From: Orbicella franksi
Taxonomy: Eukaryota
Assembly (NCBI GenBank): GCA_964199315.1
Contig: OZ116703.1
Span: forward strand, 992,001-1,056,000
Length of the DNA: 64,000 bases
Direction: 5' to 3'
In this document: piece after piece, positions 5,901 through 41,036 of the stretch
Position numbering within the stretch: position 1 is the stretch's first letter
Layout: each line of letters begins with the position of its first letter
The notes under the pieces: model-generated
The model's database searches: none
Told to the model about the DNA's origin: nothing
Seen by the model: the letters and a program-made list of their open reading frames with translations, nothing else
Translations under genes and position numbers: made by a program

Positions 5901-8559
5901 AATTATAGTGTCTGACTCAGGTCATCGGGTGAGAAGAGCTAGAATATGAACTGTCCCACCTCCTTTTCAATATTAGTCGAGTAAGCCTGTACGCGAACTG
6001 ACGAGCACACTAGCAGACGAGCACGCGAGCACACGAGCACACGAGCACACGAGCACACGAGCACACGAGCACACGAGTACACGAGCACACGAGCACACGA
6101 GCACACGAGCACACGAGCACACGAACACACGAGCACACGAGCACACGAGCACTCGAATTCTCGAGCACACAAGCACGTAAGAACGCGTTCCCACTCGAAA
6201 AATATGATTGCACGAGGAGACTCGTCTCACGCGAGGTGATTTTCGCGCGAGTCTGTATGCTCGTTCCCTGAGCAAAATAAGAGACTCTTTTTAGTCCAAA
6301 TTGGTGAGGAGATGAACAAACAGATTTATGTTTGTCTTCGCTTTTTGTTTTAATCTCTCTGTGTTATTATCTGAGATCCTGTCTGATCTTGTCAAGTGTC
6401 GCTCTACATGCTCTTTATACACCTCACTACATTAAAATCGATGGCAACCGCGTGACTTCATTCTCATTATGACTTTTTTTCAGGTAATTGAACACCAGCC
6501 ATATGATTCCTGTTGTGACTGGTGGTCGCTTGGAGTGATGCTTTACTATATGCTCACATCCATGGTTTGTGACAGAAGTTGTGATTATCCAAGTTAAAAG
6601 TGGCTTTAGTTTCAGCTGTCGATACTCTTGTAATAGTTTTCAGAAACTCGATGGAAGAACTTCGATACTGTTTTAGGATAATCGGTAAATTCCGGTCCCT
6701 GAGGAACGAAGGAGGCCTGGACTCATTTGTGCAGACGCGTTTAACTTAAGCAACTCGGTCGAAAAAAAATTGCATTGAGCAGTAATTTGTTTTAGATGCA
6801 AAAGCACTTAATTTTTTTCCTTATGTGTTCGTTTTTTTTCTTTTAAAGTAACAAGGAAAAAATATAATTCTTTACGATAGCTCTTAGAGTCATGAATAAA
6901 CACCATCATTTTTCGCGCTACAGTGTTCAAGGAGGTCTGGGGCCTCTGGAAATAGGACACCATTTGACGTCAGTAACCATGAATCAAGGCCTTGAATCAA
7001 GACCATGCCCGGTTTGATGTATTTTTTCTTCATGAACAGATGCCGTTTCCTCAAAAAGTCATCCAAGACCTCTATAACGCAATAGTTACAGACGAGGTGG
7101 AATATAGGCGTAAATTGTCTGTGATTGCTTGGAATTTGCTAACACAGGTAGGTAGACATAGTGCAGAGTAAAATTCCTTTTCTATTCCAAAACTAACGAT
7201 TACATATATTCAGAGAGAGCTGAGTTTATGACAGCTCTTCTGACATGCATTTTTCCCTCCTCATATAAAGACAACTTCTTTTTCTTCCATCAGTTGAAAG
7301 TCACTTTTAAACTACATGTTTATGTTTGAAGAACCGAGGGTTTCATTGCGCTGTAGGAAGATAACTTCAAATACTGACGCATTTTTTCAGCTGCCACAAT
7401 TCTAGATATTTTAGACATTCGCACTTATCATATGCACCTCGTTGGGCTATACATATGTCTCTTAGAATTACAATATCTTAACCTTGGTTTGTTTTCTCAA
7501 GCTCTTGGAAAAGAACCCCTTGAGAAGGATTGGTTATAAGGGTGGATCAAACCCGTGGATCAGAAGGCATGGGTTCTTCCAGGCCTTAAACTGGGACGAA
7601 CTTGAACAACGAAACATCAAGCCGCCCTGGAATCCAAGAAAAAGAATTTTGCTCGAGTAAGGATTCTTTTAAAACAAACAAACACACATACATAATGTAA
7701 AATACATTTATGCATTGTGTATGATATGATTCTGAACGAGATGGGACATAGCCAGTCATTCTGTCACAAAAGTGTCATCAGTCATTTTAGCTTTCTTTGA
7801 CAGCGAAAAAGGGTGTTTTTAGCTGTCTTCCTTTGCAGAGGGACGTCTTTTCCTGTTGATGGTTTTGTCTTGTTAAGCTGGTTGTGTTTTCAAAAAAACA
7901 GCAGAATAAGACAAAACTATTAGCAGAAAAAATGATCAAAATGTAAATATGAATGTCAGCCGGCTTATGAGCCTGTCTGTGTGTCTGTGTGGATTTATGT
8001 ATGTGTCTGAACATTGCATTTTCAATTTGATACCACAACCTTGCAATGTGCATTAGTTACCCATTATATCACTACTTTTATAGCTTCAATACACTTATTT
8101 AAAAGTTGATAGCAAAACTAGACAATTATAATTAGGCATCCATCAACATTAGGGTTTTCAGTTTACATGTTCATGACAGTGCCCTTTAACCACAGCATTC
8201 GCTAACGTTAAGGATTCTGTCCCACATATTACAAGCTATAGGTGACGCTATTTTAGACTATGTTAGGCGATTGTGTTACATAAAATGACCGAAACAATTT
8301 TAGTTGTTGGTCCAATTCAAAGACTCTAAGATCAGAACCAACAATCAATAAAGTCGTGATCTATCTTTGCAGGTGTGAGGCAAAAATGGAGAAACAAGGG
8401 AAGTCCTCTCCTGGCTGTAAGAGTTCCTCTGAGAGTTCCAATAAGACTCCCTGTGCTTCCGCTTCTTACTCTGCTTCGTGTGTTTCCGCTGAAGGCATTA
8501 AGGATGAAGATGGTGTCTCTTGTTCTCCTTCAGCGACCGACAATACTTTAACTCCATAG
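2990..8559 (+). CDS. PKC-like AGC-group Ser/Thr kinase, multi-exon; N-terminus unresolved
   Basis: Phase-consistent exons 2990-3032, 3225-3371, 3647-3808, 4366-4460, 4845-4907, 5715-5859, 6484-6564, 7040-7147, 7502-7656, 8373-8559. Motifs: [83 protein letters not shown] further exon at 2889-2944 is possible. Confidence 0.88.
5016..5266. mobile_element. MITE-like non-autonomous element in kinase intron
   Basis: Imperfect TIR (cagagcgattttta / gaaaccgcacta) and internal GATTGG / ttggttttggtttt motifs of a high-copy family I recognise from memory. Confidence 0.55.
6001..6177. repeat. Octamer tandem repeat (GAGCACAC)n, about 20 units, intronic
   Basis: Directly visible; gives the spurious ARVLVCSC ORFs. 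Confidence 0.92.
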
Positions 8560-19800: not shown

Positions 19801-20190
19801 GTCAATCATGTCTCACAATTGAAAATCTTGGATCGGAGCGGACCTGACTGAAAGGAGAGTGGATTTTTCAAAATTCAAGTTTATTGTTGTCAGAAAATTT
19901 GATTTTTATTAGGCTGTATTTGCTTCCCTCAGGACAGGCTGAATTTCAATTGCTTCTTTTTTCTCTAGGTTGACCGTAATTTACCAGTAACTATTGAAGA
20001 GTATCGTATACTTCACTGCTGACGTTTTCAGGGTTGTTTCACACTTCTTTCACTCGTATTGCTCTACGAGTAGAGCCTCCTTTACTCAACTCTTTGGATG
20101 GCGCAGATTAAAAAGTGAAAAAAAAAAGGGAAAAGAAGGTTCTGGTCGCAGGGCACCGGCGAGGAAATGTTGGAAATCCAGTAGATAGTC

Positions 20191-20411
20191 TGAATAAAAG
20201 AGAAACCAGAAACTGCAAGGGAACGGATACGATAAACGCTGCCAACGTAGGCTGGCGTTACATATCTTCGCTACACAGTGCTGACGAGCCCCAAGAAGGG
20301 CGAAACAGCTGTCCACTGTTGCGATCCTACTTTATCGGTTCTTGACATATTGGTGTCTCGAAACGTTTTTCACGTAGTATCAGCCTTGCAGTCTACTCTT
20401 TGAATAAAAGA
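20191..20411 (+). mobile_element. Retrozyme-like 210-nt unit containing the hammerhead
   Basis: 11-bp direct repeat TGAATAAAAGA at 20191-20201 and 20401-20411; nested long-range complementarity encloses the ribozyme. Confidence 0.55.
20275..20319 (+). ncRNA. Type I hammerhead ribozyme
   Basis: Stem I ACAGTG(20275-80)/CACTGT(20314-19); core CTGACGA(20281-87); stem II GCCC-caagaa-GGGC(20288-301); GAAA(20302-05); minimal stem III A-C[AGCT]G-T; cleavage triplet GTC with C17 at 20313. Confidence 0.88.
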
Positions 20412-21297
20412 AGTTGTTGCTTATCGTATCACCGTGGGGTTAGGTTTAGGGAGGGCCTGGAGGAAGGTGAGGGGAGGTGGCTGTTGGGACAGGTGTGTAG
20501 CTGGACAGAGCACGCAGCATAAAATACTAAATCCCAACTCGTTTTAAATTACATTATCCGAGCTAATTGCTAAAGGTCTGCATAAAGAAATTCACTTTCA
20601 CGCCCATTTTTTCTTCCTTGAAATAGGGCCAACTGACATAAAGAAGTTGGAAACAGAGAGTAACGGGCAATGAAACAGTTTCAAACTCCACAGTGCAATA
20701 AATAATAATGGACTCCATTCTCTCTTTTACTATAATTTAATTTATAACATTTACATATTTAATTTACATGTTGCGTTGTTACGCTCTCTGCGAAATAATA
20801 TGCATAAACTGAAACAGCAATGTAATAGAAATTAATAAATTATGATCAGTCGAGAGATTCCAGTCAAAGTTTTCTTCAGCCAAGCGGTCAAACATCAATT
20901 CTGTCTGATTTCTTAGCCTGAAAATTCAATAAAATGTATATTGGTTGAATATTGATTTCACCAAAAGGTTCAGTATTATGTTGCTTTAGGTACCCCTCGG
21001 TACCAACATGGCGTCCCCATTGAAAGCTTTAAAAATTGGGGTGAACTTGACGCGCGGATAACGCGCGTATGAAAAACTGTACAAAGCTAAATCTTGGTGA
21101 CGCTGTTTACTCTCATAATCTTTAATTAATATCCCAGATTCTTGGTGAATCCAGGAGTAAGGAAAGAGGTGGAAAGTGTATACGTGTGGCAGGAAATTAA
21201 AAAGAGTGGGAGGAAACGCTATTGCCAAAACGTGACGGAGAACGAGATTTACAACATGGCGTCAATATCTTTCAATGGAAAAGACACAAGAAAGAAT

Positions 21298-29124: not shown

Positions 29125-32100
29125 ATGAGCGAATGTGGTCGTCAAATCGACGAATCTTCGCGTCTGGTGAACCCAGTTCTGAACGCTTCGCCGGAAGATA
29201 TTGGTCGAATGGCGGTCGGCAGCATTAAAGTTTACAAAAGAAGGTGGTATATTTTAATGCTTTTTACGCTTCTCAACGCAACAGGGAATATTCTGTGGAA
29301 TACATGGCCTCCAGTTCAAGAGACATGCCAACTGGTGTTTGGTTGGGATAAAACGAACGTGTTGATTATCGGCGCTTTACAAGCGCTTGGTTCAATAATC
29401 AGCATAGTGCCGTCCGCATGGCTTTTGGACACAAAAGGTGAGCAGTAAGCAAGTTTATTCTCATTTTTTCCTTTGTTAAGCCTTGTGTAAAACGACATAA
29501 CTTTGGAAGAATCGTCTAAAGCGATCGACCGGCATATTTGTTGATATTGTTGAACAGGATAATTTGAACGAGTTCGCTCATGTTATTCTATCCGCATGAA
29601 CAGCTTCTCAACGCGAAAACGGCCTCAGATTTTTAAACGGCGGTGTCTTGTTGTGAGATCGAGTGATTATAAGCTAGCGTGTTCTTTCCTTCACCGTCAT
29701 GATCAAACAGGACAATAATTATAATGAATTCTCTAATTTTCAAGTACGAAATCGAGGGTCCGGCGAAGTCACGAAGGACAATGTTGTACGTTTGAGTTTG
29801 AAAGCTAAAAGAAAATTTGGGTATCAGATCCTAGACTAAGTGTAGCTCCTCCAAGTAACTCTAAGTCCATCGAGCGTGATTCTTAGGAAAGTGGGTGAGA
29901 GAGAAAGAGCTATGTTTTGTCGCCTCTCGGCCATTTTGGCCCAGCCATTTTGGACATTAGCATGCGCTATCTCTGGTCACGCTCACGGGGCTACGCAGCA
30001 AGCGTTCCCGTATGAAGAGCTTTTTTGCATTCTGGCCGCGCGCGTAAAGTGGAGCGAGAACAAAAACTCGTCTCTCGCGCGCTTCAATTTACGCGCGGCC
30101 AAAGTACGGAAAAGCTCTTCCTACCGGAACACTTGCTAAGCAGGCTAGCTAAGGCCTAGTCAGGACACTAGCGACACTAACGACATAAGGAGGACGGTAA
30201 GTTTGCTTTGTGAACGTCTTGACATAATGACACAATAGCAACATAACAGCATGAACATAGCGACATAGGGAAAAAACCTGATCTTTTCCTTATGCTTTTT
30301 ATGTCGATGTTCACGTTGCGACATATATAAGCTACTATGTCGTCATGTAACTATGTCGTTATATCGCTCGTGTGAACAAGGCTTGCGGCTAAAACAGCAT
30401 GAACTTAACGTCATAGGGGGAAAACAGATCTTTTCCTTATGTCGTTATGTCGATGTTTACATTATAAACATAGGCCTCTACTCAAATATCGAAGAGAAAT
30501 ATTTAGAGAATTTTAGAGATATTTAGAAAATTTAGGGATATTTAGTAAAATATTTAGAGACACTAAATTTTAGTAATATTCATGGTTTTTCTGGCTGAAC
30601 CCTATGTTTTCTTCGCTACCATTACTCCGTTCTTTGCCAGAAATAATCTTTTTCAGTGGTTCCCTACTTGAAAAATATATTCCATATCACTACAAAAGCA
30701 CTAAAGCAATAATTTTCTATACCAGCATCCAGCGGATGCTGGTATGAACATCGAAGCGCCAGAATCTTCCTCAAACCCCTCTACTACTGCGAGAAAATTT
30801 TGAAAATTTTGGCCTAGGAAAATAAGAGAAATTTAGAAATTCTTTTAATGATATTTTTTATGATTTTGAGCATTTGCGGAAAGATATTGAGGTGATTTTA
30901 CTTGATATTTCTGGAAAGGCTTAAACCGACATATGGCGATTATGTCGTTATGTCATTTTGTCGTTTTGTCGTTAGTGTGAACTAGGCTTAAGAGAGAAGA
31001 GGGTTGCTCGGAGTCTATTTATATCCAGAGGGGATGATGGTCCGTTATTTTTGGGCCAGTGTTCACCGAACTTTTCCCAGATTTGCTTGTGATGGCAAAC
31101 TACAACATGGTCTGTGACAAACATGAATCTCAAATATACAGGGCAGTTGAAGATATTTATATGAAGACTGATATGCTCCTCAGGATTACCACTGACAAGG
31201 TACGGGGCCTCCGGTGAAAGGAAACGGGGCCTGGTGAACGTAGGTTAGCTCATCAGAAACTGACGCATAATGTTTATACCTCTAGGTATACCCCACAGTA
31301 GATTCATTTCCACAGCCTAGTACAGTAGGCCTACAGTTTCATTCTTTCGTAAACCTCACAGATCGTAATTTCGTCTCCAAGACTAATTTAACTATATAGT
31401 CAAACTCAAACACTTTCCTTGACATTTTTTTTAGGTCTTCGGTTTGCAGTCATATGCTCCATGTCACTTCAAACCATCGCTGTCGTCTGCGAACTCATCC
31501 CGTCCCCTCCCCATGTGAGGACCGCGCTCATCACGTTTGCCGAGTTCTTGATTTCAGTGGCGGTACCCGCTGTACAAAATGCGGGCGTGCTTGTGCTGTC
31601 CGCGACCTGGTTCCCGCCACACGAGCGCATGACCGCCACTGCCATCGCCACACTGGTTTCGTACCTTGGGTCGGCGTTTAGCTATGTCGTGGGTCCAAAC
31701 TTCGTACCCGATGTAGATTATGGCAACTTAACTCATTATCAAACAGGAAAAGGCATCGATATCAACAAATTGAGGAATAACACCACTCCGGAACAAATGA
31801 AATTTCTTTTGACTAGAATAAACGACTACTTGTTCATCGAGGCTGTTTTAGTTGGAGTATTATTCTTCGCGGTGCTGATTTATTTTCCCGCCAAACCGCC
31901 CAGCCCACCAAGCTTGTCGTCCGCTGCCGGGCGCCTAGATTTTGCTTCTGGCGCCAAAACTCTGCTCACAAACCGGTCATTCTGGTTACTGTTGTTAATC
32001 TTCAGTCTCAGTAACGGAGTGAACTGGGGATGGTCTAGTGTCCAGGACCTTATCTTCTCTGGAGTTGGGATTGATCAGAAGACCGCTGGCTGGTTAGGAT

Positions 32101-32698
32101 TTTGGGCTAACGTTGCTTCCCTTCTTGGTATATCCTTTTCTTGGTAAGTTTTTTTCTATAGACTGGAGGAGACTGGAATACCCCAGGTAAAATCTTCGGA
32201 GTGGGTACGCTGTTTAATATGATTTGCACACGCAATTTTAGGCTTAGCTAACATTACAACACTATTTTCTCTTCACACAGGTATGCCGATCGCATTCAGA
32301 GCTTCACCAAACCAATCTTAGTCTTCCTCTTTGTCGCTACAGCCTGTGCTCAAACAGTCCTCTCTCTAGCGTGCGAGGGGGTCATACTTCTAACAAAACC
32401 CGTCTTTTATGCCTCGGGCATCTCACAGGTGGTTCTGTTCTGTGGAACTGTTCCCCTCATCATGGAACTCGCTGCCGAGTGCACATATCCGGTCGCTGAG
32501 GGAATCACGTCCGGTATAATGATCTTATCCGTGTACGTCATCAATTTTGTTTTCTTTATCGCTTTCATGTTTCCGCAAGCGAGCCCGCGATGGATGAACT
32601 GGTTACTAGTCTCCTCGACAGTGGTTTGCACTCCGCTTATAGCGCTGTACAGGGCAAGATACAAACGACTGGATGTGGACGAATCAAAACAGAGTTGA
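29125..32698 (+). CDS. SLC49A4: MFS transporter, SLC49A4/DIRC2-like paralog 1 (479 aa, 3 exons)
   Basis: Exons 29125-29437, 31435-32143, 32281-32698 (1440 nt, in frame). Motifs VYKRRWYIL, WNTWPP, LSATWFPPHERMTATAI, YFPAKPPSPPSLSS, ELAAECTYPVAEG. Confidence 0.85.
30151..30990. mobile_element. Nested MITEs in intron 1 of MFS paralog 1
   Basis: Outer element aaggcctagt...gacataa / ttatgtc...gtgtgaactaggctta. Inner element 30472-30922 with imperfect TIR aggcctctactcaaatatc / gatatttctggaaaggctt. Confidence 0.6.
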
Positions 32699-38126: not shown

Positions 38127-41036
38127 ATGAAGAAAAATCAGTCCTTTGAAGAGAGAGCGGCCTTGCTTCGTTCAGAAGATCGGCGATATCGGTCGCTTGG
38201 TTCCGTTCACCAAAACAAATGCAAGGTCTACAAACGCCGATGGTACATTCTCACTATTTTCTCAATCGTTGCGGCGCTCAACAATTTAATCTGGAATACT
38301 TGGGGACCTATACAGGGTACTTCACAAGTTGTGTTTGGCTGGGACAACACCACTATTACACTGCTGGCTGATTGGGGCCCGATATCATTCGTTGTTGCCG
38401 TTGTTCCGATGTGCTGGTTGATGGATATGAAAGGTAAGCTTAAACGTTATGTCAATTAGATTAAGCTCATTGTGTTACTGATAGCAGACTTCTTATTCGT
38501 TTCAATGTAAGCTTAATTTCAAATGATAAAGATTAGACAGCGTTGGGTTTCGATGGATCCAATGAACAAACTGTGCGTGTAAAATTGCATAGTAGGAGTA
38601 GTTCTAAGTTACCGTAGTTCCCTCTAGAAATTCCAGCTTTGGTTCATACATTCCTTGAATAACTGGATCATGTACACTAAAGACATCCGCAGTCAAATGT
38701 GGATCAATACCCTTAATTGATACCCTTGATCAACCCTCTGTCGACCCTTGATGGACACTTGATTGATACTCCATCGACACTCCATCAAAACCTTATTTGA
38801 TATTCAATCAACACTTGATAGACATCTTGGTCAACAGTCAGTCGAGAACTGTGTAATTTTCAATCACTGCATATGAGATATCGATAGAGTGTCATTCCTG
38901 GGTCTATACTTGAGGGTATTGATTGATACTCGACGGTGGTTGCCTTTAGTACACATGATCCTGGAGACCTTGAATTTTCCAATAACCTTCCTTAGGGTGG
39001 GTATGGATATTTTCTGGAACCACACTGTCACAATTTCATACATTTCATCATATCCAGTTGACGTAGCAATGACCCTAGTAACAGAAGTTGGAGTTAAGTG
39101 TCAGCTCAGATAGGCTCCTTCGACTCACTGAACTGGAACAAGTGTGATCAGGAATATGGATCTAAGTCGATCATATTGACTCTTTTTCTGTGTTGATTTA
39201 TAGGCCTAAGAGTAGCTGTCCTAGTTGCCATTTTTTGTGAGTTTATTGGATCTGGCCTGCGCTGTATACCACTCAGTGATCAGCATGTGAACCTACAGAC
39301 TGCGCTTATCCATTGTGGACAGTTTATAACTGGAATTGGAGGTCCAATTGCCATGGCTGCAGCTCCAATGGTTTCTGCAGCGTGGTTCCCTCCTGAGCAG
39401 CGTACGACTGCGACTGCAATTTCTTCCCTGGCTTGTTACAGTGGGACAGCTTTGTCATTTGTAATTGGGCCACTTTTGGTTCCTGATGTGGAGGAATATT
39501 TCAAACAAAATGAGCTTAACGTTACCAGTAATGGGCAGATTTCTTATCTTGAGCTGAGAAATCATTTTAACCAGACAGAGATAGACTACTTCAAGCACAA
39601 AATAATGTACCTGATGTACATAGAGCTGGGAATCACCGCTCTTACAATGTTGTGTGTTATCATTCATTTTCCTGAGAAGCCCAAACTGCCACCAAGTGTC
39701 ACTGCTGCCATTGGACGTCTGGAATTCAAAGTTGGTGCCAAGAGCTTACTAAAGAATTCACAGTTTTGGCTGTTGGTGGTTATTTATGGAATAGGAACTG
39801 GAGTTTATGGTGGCTGGTGTTCAATTCTAGACCTGAACCTCTCACAGTTCGATATTGATCAGAAAACTGCTGGTTGGTTAGGGTTTGGTGCCGTTGTTGC
39901 TGGATCAGTCTCAGGAATTTCATTGTCAATGTAAGCACAAAGTTACACTTGTACTGTTAACTTAAACATACAGTTGAACCTGACTATCTAGAACATGTTA
40001 TCTTGAACTCCCTGTTATCTCAGACTCAAATAATTTCTCCTTTGAATCTGATTTTCTTTGTTCATTTACAATAAATTGGCTATGTTAAACTCCTGCCTTT
40101 TTGTACAATTTTTTCATCTTCCTAAATCAGGAAAGTGGGCTTCAGGTGTAGTTAACATACATCAATTCATTAATTGAGACACTCACTTGTTGTTCTGTCA
40201 TCTTTTATAAGCAAATTCCTTTAGGCTAACTAGTGTAAATCTCTCTTTATTGAAAACTTTTTAAATGGTGCACTTTTTAAACGGTACACCTGGGTGGAGA
40301 GAGGCACTGTGAGAGTAAAGTGTCTTGCCCAAGAACACGACGCAATGTGCCCGGCCAGGGGTTGGACATGTAGTGCTCAATCCTGAGATGAGCACACTAA
40401 CTATGGGGTCTCCGCACCTCCCATTAATGTATATGTAATGAAAAGTATTAATTTAAGATCATTGCTTTTTGTTTCAGATTTGCTGACCACTTCACTCGTT
40501 ACATGAAGCTGATTGTCATAGCACTCCTAACTGGTGCCACAGCATCGCTCTCAATTTTTACTCTGATATGTGCTGGTGTTATTCCGTACTCAAAACTTGT
40601 CCTCTTTATAACAAGCATCTTGGGAGGGTTGTTCGTGAATGGAACCATCCCACTATTCTTTGAATTAGCTGTGGAATCTACATACCCAGTCGCTGAAGGA
40701 ATCACCTCAGGATTCCTAACATTCTCCAATAATTTCTTGCAAATAGTTTTCTACATCTTCCCAATGCTGCCGCACTTTGGTCTAAAATGGATCAACTGGT
40801 GCACTTTTGTGACGACCGGTCTTTGCATTCCTCTCTTGATGCTGTGGAAGCAGAGGCGCTACCGCTCTGATGTTGATGCAAAAGACAGCTATGTTCCTGC
40901 CCCCCATAACAAAGAACTGAGCACTGAGGTCAATTATGGCAGTGGAAGTGTATCATCTAGTGTTAATGGTTTCCTACCAGGTTCTTCAGCACAGACACAT
41001 TCTTATGGCACAAGTAGTTATCCTTCAGTTGCATAA
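38127..41036 (+). CDS. SLC49A4: MFS transporter, SLC49A4/DIRC2-like paralog 2 (530 aa, 3 exons)
   Basis: Exons 38127-38433, 39204-39930, 40478-41036 (1593 nt, in frame); same intron positions and phases as paralog 1. Motifs EERAALL, VYKRRWYIL, WNTWGPI, SAAWFPPEQRTTATAI, FFELAVESTYPVAEG. Confidence 0.9.
38665..38961. mobile_element. MITE in intron 1 of MFS paralog 2
   Basis: TIR ggatcatgtacactaaagacatcc / gttgcctttagtacacatgatcc; internal ttgat/cgac repeats. Confidence 0.7.
40283..40422 (-). mobile_element. tRNA-derived SINE 5' part
   Basis: Reverse strand: tRNA-like head followed by gtgttcttgggcaagacactttactctcacagtgcctctctccacccaggtgtacc, a conserved SINE core block. Confidence 0.7.

Follow-up and report, generated by a model that had tools for sequence, protein, structure and literature searches.

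Stony corals contain thousands of hammerhead ribozyme motifs, which reside in retrozymes and Penelope-like elements. Short non-coding animal repeats, dispersed or tandem, that have type I hammerheads with a weak helix III also include Sm-alpha of Schistosoma and satellite 2 of the newt. The LTR retrozymes of plants are recognized by LTRs with type III hammerheads, a PBS, a PPT and a 4-bp duplication. For LINE-1 elements, twin priming, reportedly described by Ostertag and Kazazian in 2001, is said to underlie the 5' inversion of L1 insertions.

More than 6000 type I hammerheads, falling into 16 families, were described in the coral Acropora millepora (Cervera and de la Pena 2020, PMC7229834). 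Tandem retrozymes of this species are 220–245 bp long, are expressed as circular RNA and show duplications of more than 4 bp, and the hammerheads of invertebrate retrozymes have a helix III of 2 bp with a tetraloop (PMC7229834). Penelope-like elements are their likely mobilisers, and animal retrozymes have been proposed to be derivatives of these elements (PMC7229834). In a later preprint, consensus lengths of 51–972 bp were given for retrozymes, monomer derivatives "that could not transpose" were described, and retrozymes were found to be related in sequence to the terminal repeats of Penelope-like elements (Li, Clavereau and Pollet 2026 preprint, 10.64898/2026.07.22.740005). Insertions of Penelope-like elements exhibit strong 5' truncation, frequent partial tandems and, often, an adjacent inverted, 5'-truncated copy; they carry a short extension (30–40 bp) at one end only, and hammerheads lie near the 3' end (Craig et al. 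2021, PMC8557442).

The window analyzed here is a stretch of 64 kb, C6:992001–1056000 of a 497-Mb, 805-contig stony-coral assembly, and coordinates given below as plain numbers refer to it. In a first-pass annotation, positions 20191–20411 had been read as an integrant of retrozyme type, retrozymes being non-coding retroelements with a hammerhead. This reading is sustained by the hammerhead, by the existence of a multi-copy family and by a target-site duplication. We conclude that 20202–20402 is very probably a dead-on-arrival insertion of a dispersed non-coding hammerhead retroelement, best filed as a non-LTR retrozyme that is non-autonomous and dependent on Penelope-like elements. The termini of the insertion, its duplication, the inversion within it and the loss of 44 nt from it were observed directly.

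The insertion, its boundaries and its ribozyme

An 11-bp direct repeat, TGAATAAAAGA, occurs at 20191–20201 and again at 20401–20411. The two copies are 100% identical and are placed 210 nt apart, start to start (family D8 of the repeat finder). Four pairs of complementary blocks were also observed: AAAGAG (20197–20202) with CTCTTT (20396–20401), ACTGCAAGG (20212–20220) with CCTTGCAGT (20384–20392), CGATAAA (20230–20236) with TTTATCG (20331–20337), and GTAGG (20247–20251) with CCTAC (20326–20330). The repeat and all four pairings had been listed in the first-pass annotation, and reading of the sequence together with the repeat finder located each of them at the positions given there.

When 20150–20450 was searched against the host genome, 66 scored matches out of 414 candidates were obtained. 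The 45-mer of the ribozyme had 191 genomic copies at up to two mismatches, 86 of them identical to the window copy. A 21-mer from the distal terminus had 195 genomic matches, and a 27-mer from the interior of the family unit occurred 96 times. Sister copies in the genome number ~200–400, and the dispersed copies that the first-pass annotation had proposed to look for do exist. In two DNA runs, reads were several hundred times deeper over 20192–20396 than over the flanks.

Sister copies match the window only from ~20194–20202 to 20395–20402. Contigs assembled from sister-copy reads leave into unrelated sequence exactly at 20200/20202, 20250/20251 and 20395/20402. At the left copy of the repeat, family homology starts at 20194–20202 and the read contigs diverge before 20200/20202. 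At the right copy, sister homology stops at 20395–20402, and the flank beyond it is single-copy and unrelated to the family. Family similarity starts and stops within 1–2 nt of the 11-bp repeat. Both flanks of the insert are single-copy in the genome, and their resemblance to the family is no greater than that of shuffled sequence. Repeats of 11 bp or more were present in only ~1% of displaced control windows. Since sister homology ends at the repeat and the flanks are single-copy, the 11-bp repeat is a genuine target-site duplication, as had been suggested. A single-copy unit, or homology running past the repeats, had been named beforehand as evidence against the first reading; the element is multi-copy and its homology ends at the repeats.

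An allele lacking the insertion was looked for in the reads of the two DNA runs, one of which may be the source of the assembly. No joint that skips the insert was seen, and both junctions were bridged by error-free or near error-free contigs. A paralogous empty site was likewise not found, both flanks being single-copy in the genome. The window copy has private A residues at 20345 and 20349; in the reads, virtually every sister copy has T and G there. The A residues are substitutions that followed insertion.

Some features of the surrounding DNA may be recorded here. A 10-bp inverted repeat (20226–20235/20421–20430, repeat finder) had raised the suspicion of an older family copy in the flanks. 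The flanks scored no better than shuffles against the unit, and the inverted repeat was treated as chance. A G-rich tract (20436–20500) stands directly after the insertion. Microsatellite-like arrays are present at 638–752 (GGCGGGT x17) and at 6001–6176 (ACGAGCAC x22). Two ORF fragments on the plus strand, 31419–32147 and 39287–39934, matched MFS_1 (Major Facilitator Superfamily) with E-values of 9e-09 and 2e-10, and are probably exons of transporter genes 11–19 kb downstream of the insertion.

A type I hammerhead ribozyme was found at 20275–20319 on the plus strand. The match to Hammerhead_1 (RF00163) spans the full model (1–45) and scores 38.8 bits (E 2.9e-06) against a gathering score of 34; no other Rfam family exceeded its gathering score in the 64-kb window. 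The cmscan alignment contains the core CUGACGA ... GAAA and the cleavage triplet GUC^C, and shows pairing in all three helices (I, II and III). Helix I has 6 bp (ACAGUG/CACUGU) and can be extended via a small internal loop to UCGC/GCGA. Helix II has 4 bp (GCCC/GGGC) and the loop CAAGAA, while helix III consists of just 2 bp and is capped by the palindromic tetraloop AGCU. Hence, by its full-length match above gathering, its conserved core, its three helices and its GUH triplet, the motif belongs to RF00163. The cut is predicted to fall after GUC, between C20313 and C20314. The hammerhead of the window is the commonest form in the family. Within helix II, ~16% of family reads have A in place of G at 20300.

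A 526-nt family unit and the two pieces in the window

The canonical unit of the family is 526 nt long. It is represented by a tandem array on contig C1 (locus L065), with hammerheads at 2705, 3231, 3757 and 4283 of the locus and units that are 99–99.7% identical to one another. A second trace of a tandem, a 524-nt repeat of the terminus, was found on C5. The unit was numbered from the first base of the ribozyme (position 1). The ribozyme segment comprises 502–526 and 1 to ~130, and is followed by a spacer of ~40 nt with a T-run. The distal end module takes up 173–230, a linker that is continuous in four loci takes up 231–268, and an interior segment with a long near-perfect hairpin takes up 269–501. 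This hairpin lies at unit 376–434 (e.g. L065:3080–3138) and has an almost perfect stem of ~23 bp (CUUGCGCCCCGAAAC...GUUUCGGGGCGCAAG). It is kept in every copy that reaches that far, and a similar isolated hairpin adjoins the copy at L019.

When 30 sister loci were mapped, the window sequence was found to split into two modules, 20194–20251 (58 nt) and 20250–20402 (153 nt, containing the ribozyme). Almost everywhere else in the family the two are separated, and their orientation relative to each other is the reverse of that seen here; canonical copies have the distal piece on the strand of the ribozyme segment, ~40 nt further downstream. The first arm of the insertion (20202–20251) corresponds, in inverted orientation, to the ~58 nt of the unit that lead up to its distal (D) 3' terminus. 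The sense strand of this arm is the minus strand of the window, on which 20194–20251 matches unit 230->173 with 93.1% identity. The second arm (20250–20402, plus strand) extends over 153 nt, begins 25 nt before the ribozyme and reaches the proximal (P) 3' terminus; it matches unit 502–526 followed by 1–121/128 with 96–97% identity. It is 96–99% identical to at least 40 scored genomic copies, and the alignment shows homology stopping at 20402. Read through, the window copy is unit 230->173 on the minus strand and then 502->128 on the plus strand, with the intervening ~44 nt missing and one piece flipped.

The stretch had been taken for a single integrated monomer. The family monomer measures 526 nt, however, and the insert amounts to ~38% of it, in two mutually inverted pieces. 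Copies spaced by ~210 nt, which the first-pass annotation had suggested looking for, did not appear: the genome has no same-strand ribozyme pairs ~210 nt apart. Nor does the assembly contain an end-to-start tandem junction, gaps of 0–60 nt being allowed. The window copy has one ribozyme and no tandem junction, and bracketing by two ribozymes holds for the family (as in the C1 array) but not for this copy. With its one ribozyme, the window copy would undergo at most one predicted cut, after C20313, in a read-through transcript of the plus strand. A second cleavage site is lacking, so that a unit-length RNA cannot be released or circularised from this copy. A join of 20396 to 20200 was present as one contig in each of the two DNA runs, at approximately single-copy depth, and was absent from the assembly. 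Since this join was found in DNA runs, it is no evidence of circular RNA.

The insert was folded in linear and in circular form. Its linear MFE was -62.7 kcal/mol (z -3.1 against shuffles), and that of the 210-nt circle was -60.6 kcal/mol (z -3.9). The fold is closed by a 9-bp stem, ACUGCAAGG/CCUUGCAGU. The two inner pairings of the earlier list are unused in the MFE structure, which has a local hairpin across the 20250/20251 junction instead. The MFE fold of the insert does not take the catalytic hammerhead fold; helix III, as described above, has 2 bp and a palindromic tetraloop. When the 526-nt unit was folded from cut site to cut site, the linear MFE was -197.5 kcal/mol (z -8.1) and the circular MFE was -191.4 kcal/mol (z -8.3), with 68% of the bases paired. 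The strong self-pairing predicted for the unit matches the look of retrozyme RNAs, to which the modest predicted fold of the window copy is not comparable.

The proximal and distal end modules are weakly alike, their local alignment scoring 28 as compared to 17.7 ± 2.8 for shuffles (shuffle maximum 30). Both hold GATCCTAC, TTTATCG and CCTTGCAGT, and both end in a T-rich ...TCT followed by CAT..TTTT. Since the first arm is the distal module in reverse complement and the second ends in the proximal module, the weak likeness of the two modules lets the arms of the insert pair. The fold-back had been regarded as the compact form of a circular RNA. It results instead from the inversion that rearranged this copy and is not a native rod; the junction between the two arms is found in only one other copy, at C11:27034845 (locus L002).

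These results bear on the view that the 210-nt stretch is one intact small retrozyme or circular-RNA monomer, with the fold-back as its native rod and the repeat as a duplication or a terminal redundancy. The hammerhead and the flanking duplication are real, the stretch folds better than shuffles (z -3 to -4), and L002 has the same layout with a 9-bp duplication of its own, AAATGAAAA. The family unit is nevertheless 526 nt long and far more self-paired (z -8.3 as a circle), and the first 58 nt of the stretch are inverted relative to every canonical copy. The junction exists at only two genomic sites, neither a tandem junction nor a ~210-nt spacing of ribozymes accompanies it, and excision of a unit is impossible with one ribozyme. 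This view is therefore largely refuted, and we consider it very unlikely.

The likeness between the window copy and L002 calls for another comparison. Their ribozyme arms share the inner end to the nucleotide, their junctions differ only by a 5–6-nt indel, and they have in common a C variant in ...GCAGTCTAC..., while their duplications differ and their outer ends differ slightly. Such a pattern would be expected had the layout arisen once, with a ~200-nt product that has a valid 3' terminus on each strand being recopied as a rearranged mini-element, of which the two loci would be sisters. Only two such copies exist, however; they are 93% identical and are no closer to each other than to other family members. 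The C variant is present in 5 of 33 copies (15%), ordinary ones among them. Moreover, an ordinary single arm (L027) starts at unit position 506, 4 nt away, and ~502–506 may be a common stop point. Propagation of a mini-element is thus improbable in our estimate, and the two loci may go back either to one rearranged founder or to two independent events at a favored stop.

A different kind of rearrangement was noted at L066:1864–5707 (C1, ~35514360–35518200), where an unrelated stretch of 3.8 kb that lacks long ORFs splits a family copy at unit 276/277. This configuration recurs ~100 and 200 kb away on C1, which suggests large segmental duplications. Similar regular spacings were seen on C6 (36.6 kb x 4) and on C8.

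Architecture of the sister insertions

The sister loci analyzed were the best-scoring matches to the window's own sequence and not a random sample. Among 26 sister insertions, every arm had its outward end at unit 124–146 (P) or at 220–231 (D), while inner ends fell anywhere. Sixteen insertions, the window copy included, have two arms. One P and one D end face outward in 13 of these, and P/P or D/D combinations were not observed (0/16). In the three exceptions (L019, L020 and L023), either a short snap-back is present or an end is shortened.

Direct repeats of 9–15 bp were present at the boundaries of 16 of the 26 insertions, compared with 1.9% of displaced control windows. Repeats of 8–15 bp flanked 12 of the 13 P/D insertions, and across the insertions of the family the duplication measured 7–15 bp. 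Single arms with variable 5' truncation also keep their duplications (12 bp in L025, 13 bp in L026 and 13 bp in L027).

The tandem array on C1 (L065:2279–4425, i.e., C1:44083779–44085925) is itself two-armed. A 63-nt inverted distal piece is followed by ~3.97 head-to-tail units of 526 nt, with four intact hammerheads. The array of 2.1 kb is enclosed as a whole by one 13-bp duplication, TCATTTTCAACAA. Because one duplication encloses the whole, the array was inserted in a single event, either with a multimeric RNA as template or by repeated copying round a circular one.

The same set of insertions allows a DNA transposon to be considered. If the element were a MITE, the imperfect inverted ends (AGAAACCAGAAACTGCAAGG... 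and ...CCTTGCAGTCTA...) would be its terminal inverted repeats and the 11-bp repeat a duplication made by a transposase. In favor of this view, the termini of two-armed copies are imperfectly inverted and duplications flank them. The duplications vary between 7 and 15 bp, however, and the inner junctions occur anywhere; many variably truncated single arms are still flanked by duplications, and one duplication encloses a head-to-tail array of four units. Neither a duplication of fixed length nor a set of uniform copies bounded by terminal inverted repeats was found, and we attach almost no probability to a MITE or other DNA transposon. Target-primed reverse transcription is favored over a DNA transposon, since the length of the duplication and the extent of 5' truncation vary and single-armed copies exist.

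The lengths of the arms were also noted. Eight of ~45 arms, in L004, L007, L015, L017, L019, L021 and L028, are 470–512 nt long. They start 12–35 nt downstream of their own end terminus (P or D) and so cover almost one lap of 526 nt, with the cut site uninterrupted. They are compatible with a cDNA that made one lap of a template, circular or uncleaved; their enrichment is only ~twofold over a uniform spread. In a single case, L003:460 (C6, ~2899030), an arm starts at unit 43, three bases from the predicted cut at 39/40, as expected for a cDNA that reaches the 5' end of a self-cleaved RNA.

Partner machinery, related elements and a proposed mechanism

No reverse transcriptase is encoded in the 64-kb window, in agreement with the earlier statement that no such partner lies nearby. 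An ORF for a reverse transcriptase or GIY-YIG endonuclease, or a remnant of one, was likewise absent from the window and from ~1.5 kb around 30 sister copies. In the genome as a whole, at least 149 significant matches to GIY-YIG were obtained from 1018 candidates. Two of these loci, L051:1459–3252 (minus strand) and L060:19–2079 (plus strand), contain open frames of 597 and 686 aa in which RVT_1 precedes GIY-YIG. They are 96% identical and constitute a young Penelope-like family. Homology between them stops ~76 nt past the stop codon, and their sampled flanks have no hammerhead.

When 30 GIY-YIG loci were examined as possible partners, none had BLAST similarity to the family unit, and no hammerhead was found in them by Rfam (at gathering or at E<=1) or by a regular expression for the core. 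The 76-nt 3' UTR of L060 appeared faintly similar to the end modules of the family; the best E-value in a profile search was ~6, and this candidate was dropped. Contigs of the family were present in poly(A) RNA libraries, but the ratio of element depth to flank depth was lower there, not higher, than in the DNA runs, and these libraries showed no back-junction.

The family shares with metazoan non-LTR retrozymes a type I hammerhead with a 2-bp helix III and a tetraloop, the non-coding nature and low GC of the unit, its high degree of self-pairing, head-to-tail arrays (526 nt x ~4 in L065) and duplications of more than 4 bp. Such retrozymes are on record from stony corals, and descriptions of monomer or derivative copies exist too. 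Each non-coding unit of 526 nt has one type I hammerhead and no remnants of Penelope-like proteins, as in these elements. The unit is longer than the 220–245 nt of A. millepora retrozymes and the 150–450 nt of the 2020 paper, and is within the 51–972 bp of the 2026 preprint. The family differs further in that most of its copies do not form long arrays but are dispersed insertions with one or two arms, and in that it is known here as DNA copies; the window copy, moreover, is a rearranged fragment and not a unit. With Schistosoma Sm-alpha and newt satellite 2, whose hosts are unrelated to the coral, the family shares the general description given above. Assignment to the LTR retrozymes of plants was rejected, as the hammerhead is of type I, LTRs are lacking and the duplication has 11 bp.

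With Penelope-like insertions, the family has in common 5' truncation, an adjacent inverted and truncated copy, partial tandems, an extension at one end only and a hammerhead near the 3' end; duplication of variable length completes this insertion signature. In contrast, the one-sided extension is ~95 nt here (from P to D) and 30–40 bp in published elements, no reverse transcriptase/GIY-YIG ORF was found in or near the family copies examined, and there is no similarity to the Penelope-like loci sampled. An autonomous Penelope-like element was dismissed, as an ORF combining reverse transcriptase and GIY-YIG occurs neither in the window nor beside the 30 sister copies. The window copy resembles a product of L1 twin priming in its inverted 5' segment joined to a short 3' segment, the loss of ~44 nt of RNA sequence at the junction, the 2-nt microhomology and the one flanking duplication. 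Here, unlike in L1, the second priming site is defined, being nearly always the proximal end module, and there is no poly(A) tail.

The kind of element is already known, because the published features of retrozymes and of Penelope-like insertions cover the family (PMC7229834, PMC8557442, 10.64898/2026.07.22.740005). The family of 526 nt itself has no match to a published sequence in the supplement of PMC7229834, none of the ribozyme sequences listed there matching it.

A sequence of events for the dispersal of the family may be proposed from the structure of its insertions. Master copies such as the array on C1 would give rise to a unit-length or multimeric RNA. A Penelope-type reverse transcriptase-endonuclease, acting in trans, would reverse-transcribe this RNA at a staggered break. 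On the (+) RNA, cDNA synthesis would start from both exposed DNA 3' ends, the distal module serving one of them and the proximal module the other, and the two cDNAs would be joined in the middle; the 2-nt GG overlap at 20250/20251 would be this joint in the window. Both cDNAs of the window copy would have ended early, at 58 and 153 nt. It is from the insertion scars that we infer mobilisation in trans by Penelope-like machinery.

The outward ends suggest, tentatively, a more general rule, which we hold to be possible but doubtful. Two similar 3' modules ~95 nt apart would both be used at each integration, one on each side of the staggered break, so that one P and one D end would always face outward.

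The window copy itself is an inert fragment in single-copy DNA and is of small importance. Its value is that of a minimal, clean example, with two outward 3' ends, an 11-bp duplication and a 2-nt overlap at the junction. It also advises caution, as a good fold and a flanking repeat around a solo hammerhead are no proof of a circular-RNA unit. The regularity of P and D ends and the single duplication around a whole array may bear on how retrozymes integrate. If true, the two-terminus rule would account for the one-sided 'tail' of Penelope-like insertions, and the window copy would be its smallest product. Were it general, it would provide direct structural evidence for double-ended target-primed reverse transcription of multimeric or circular retrozyme RNA with Penelope-type machinery.
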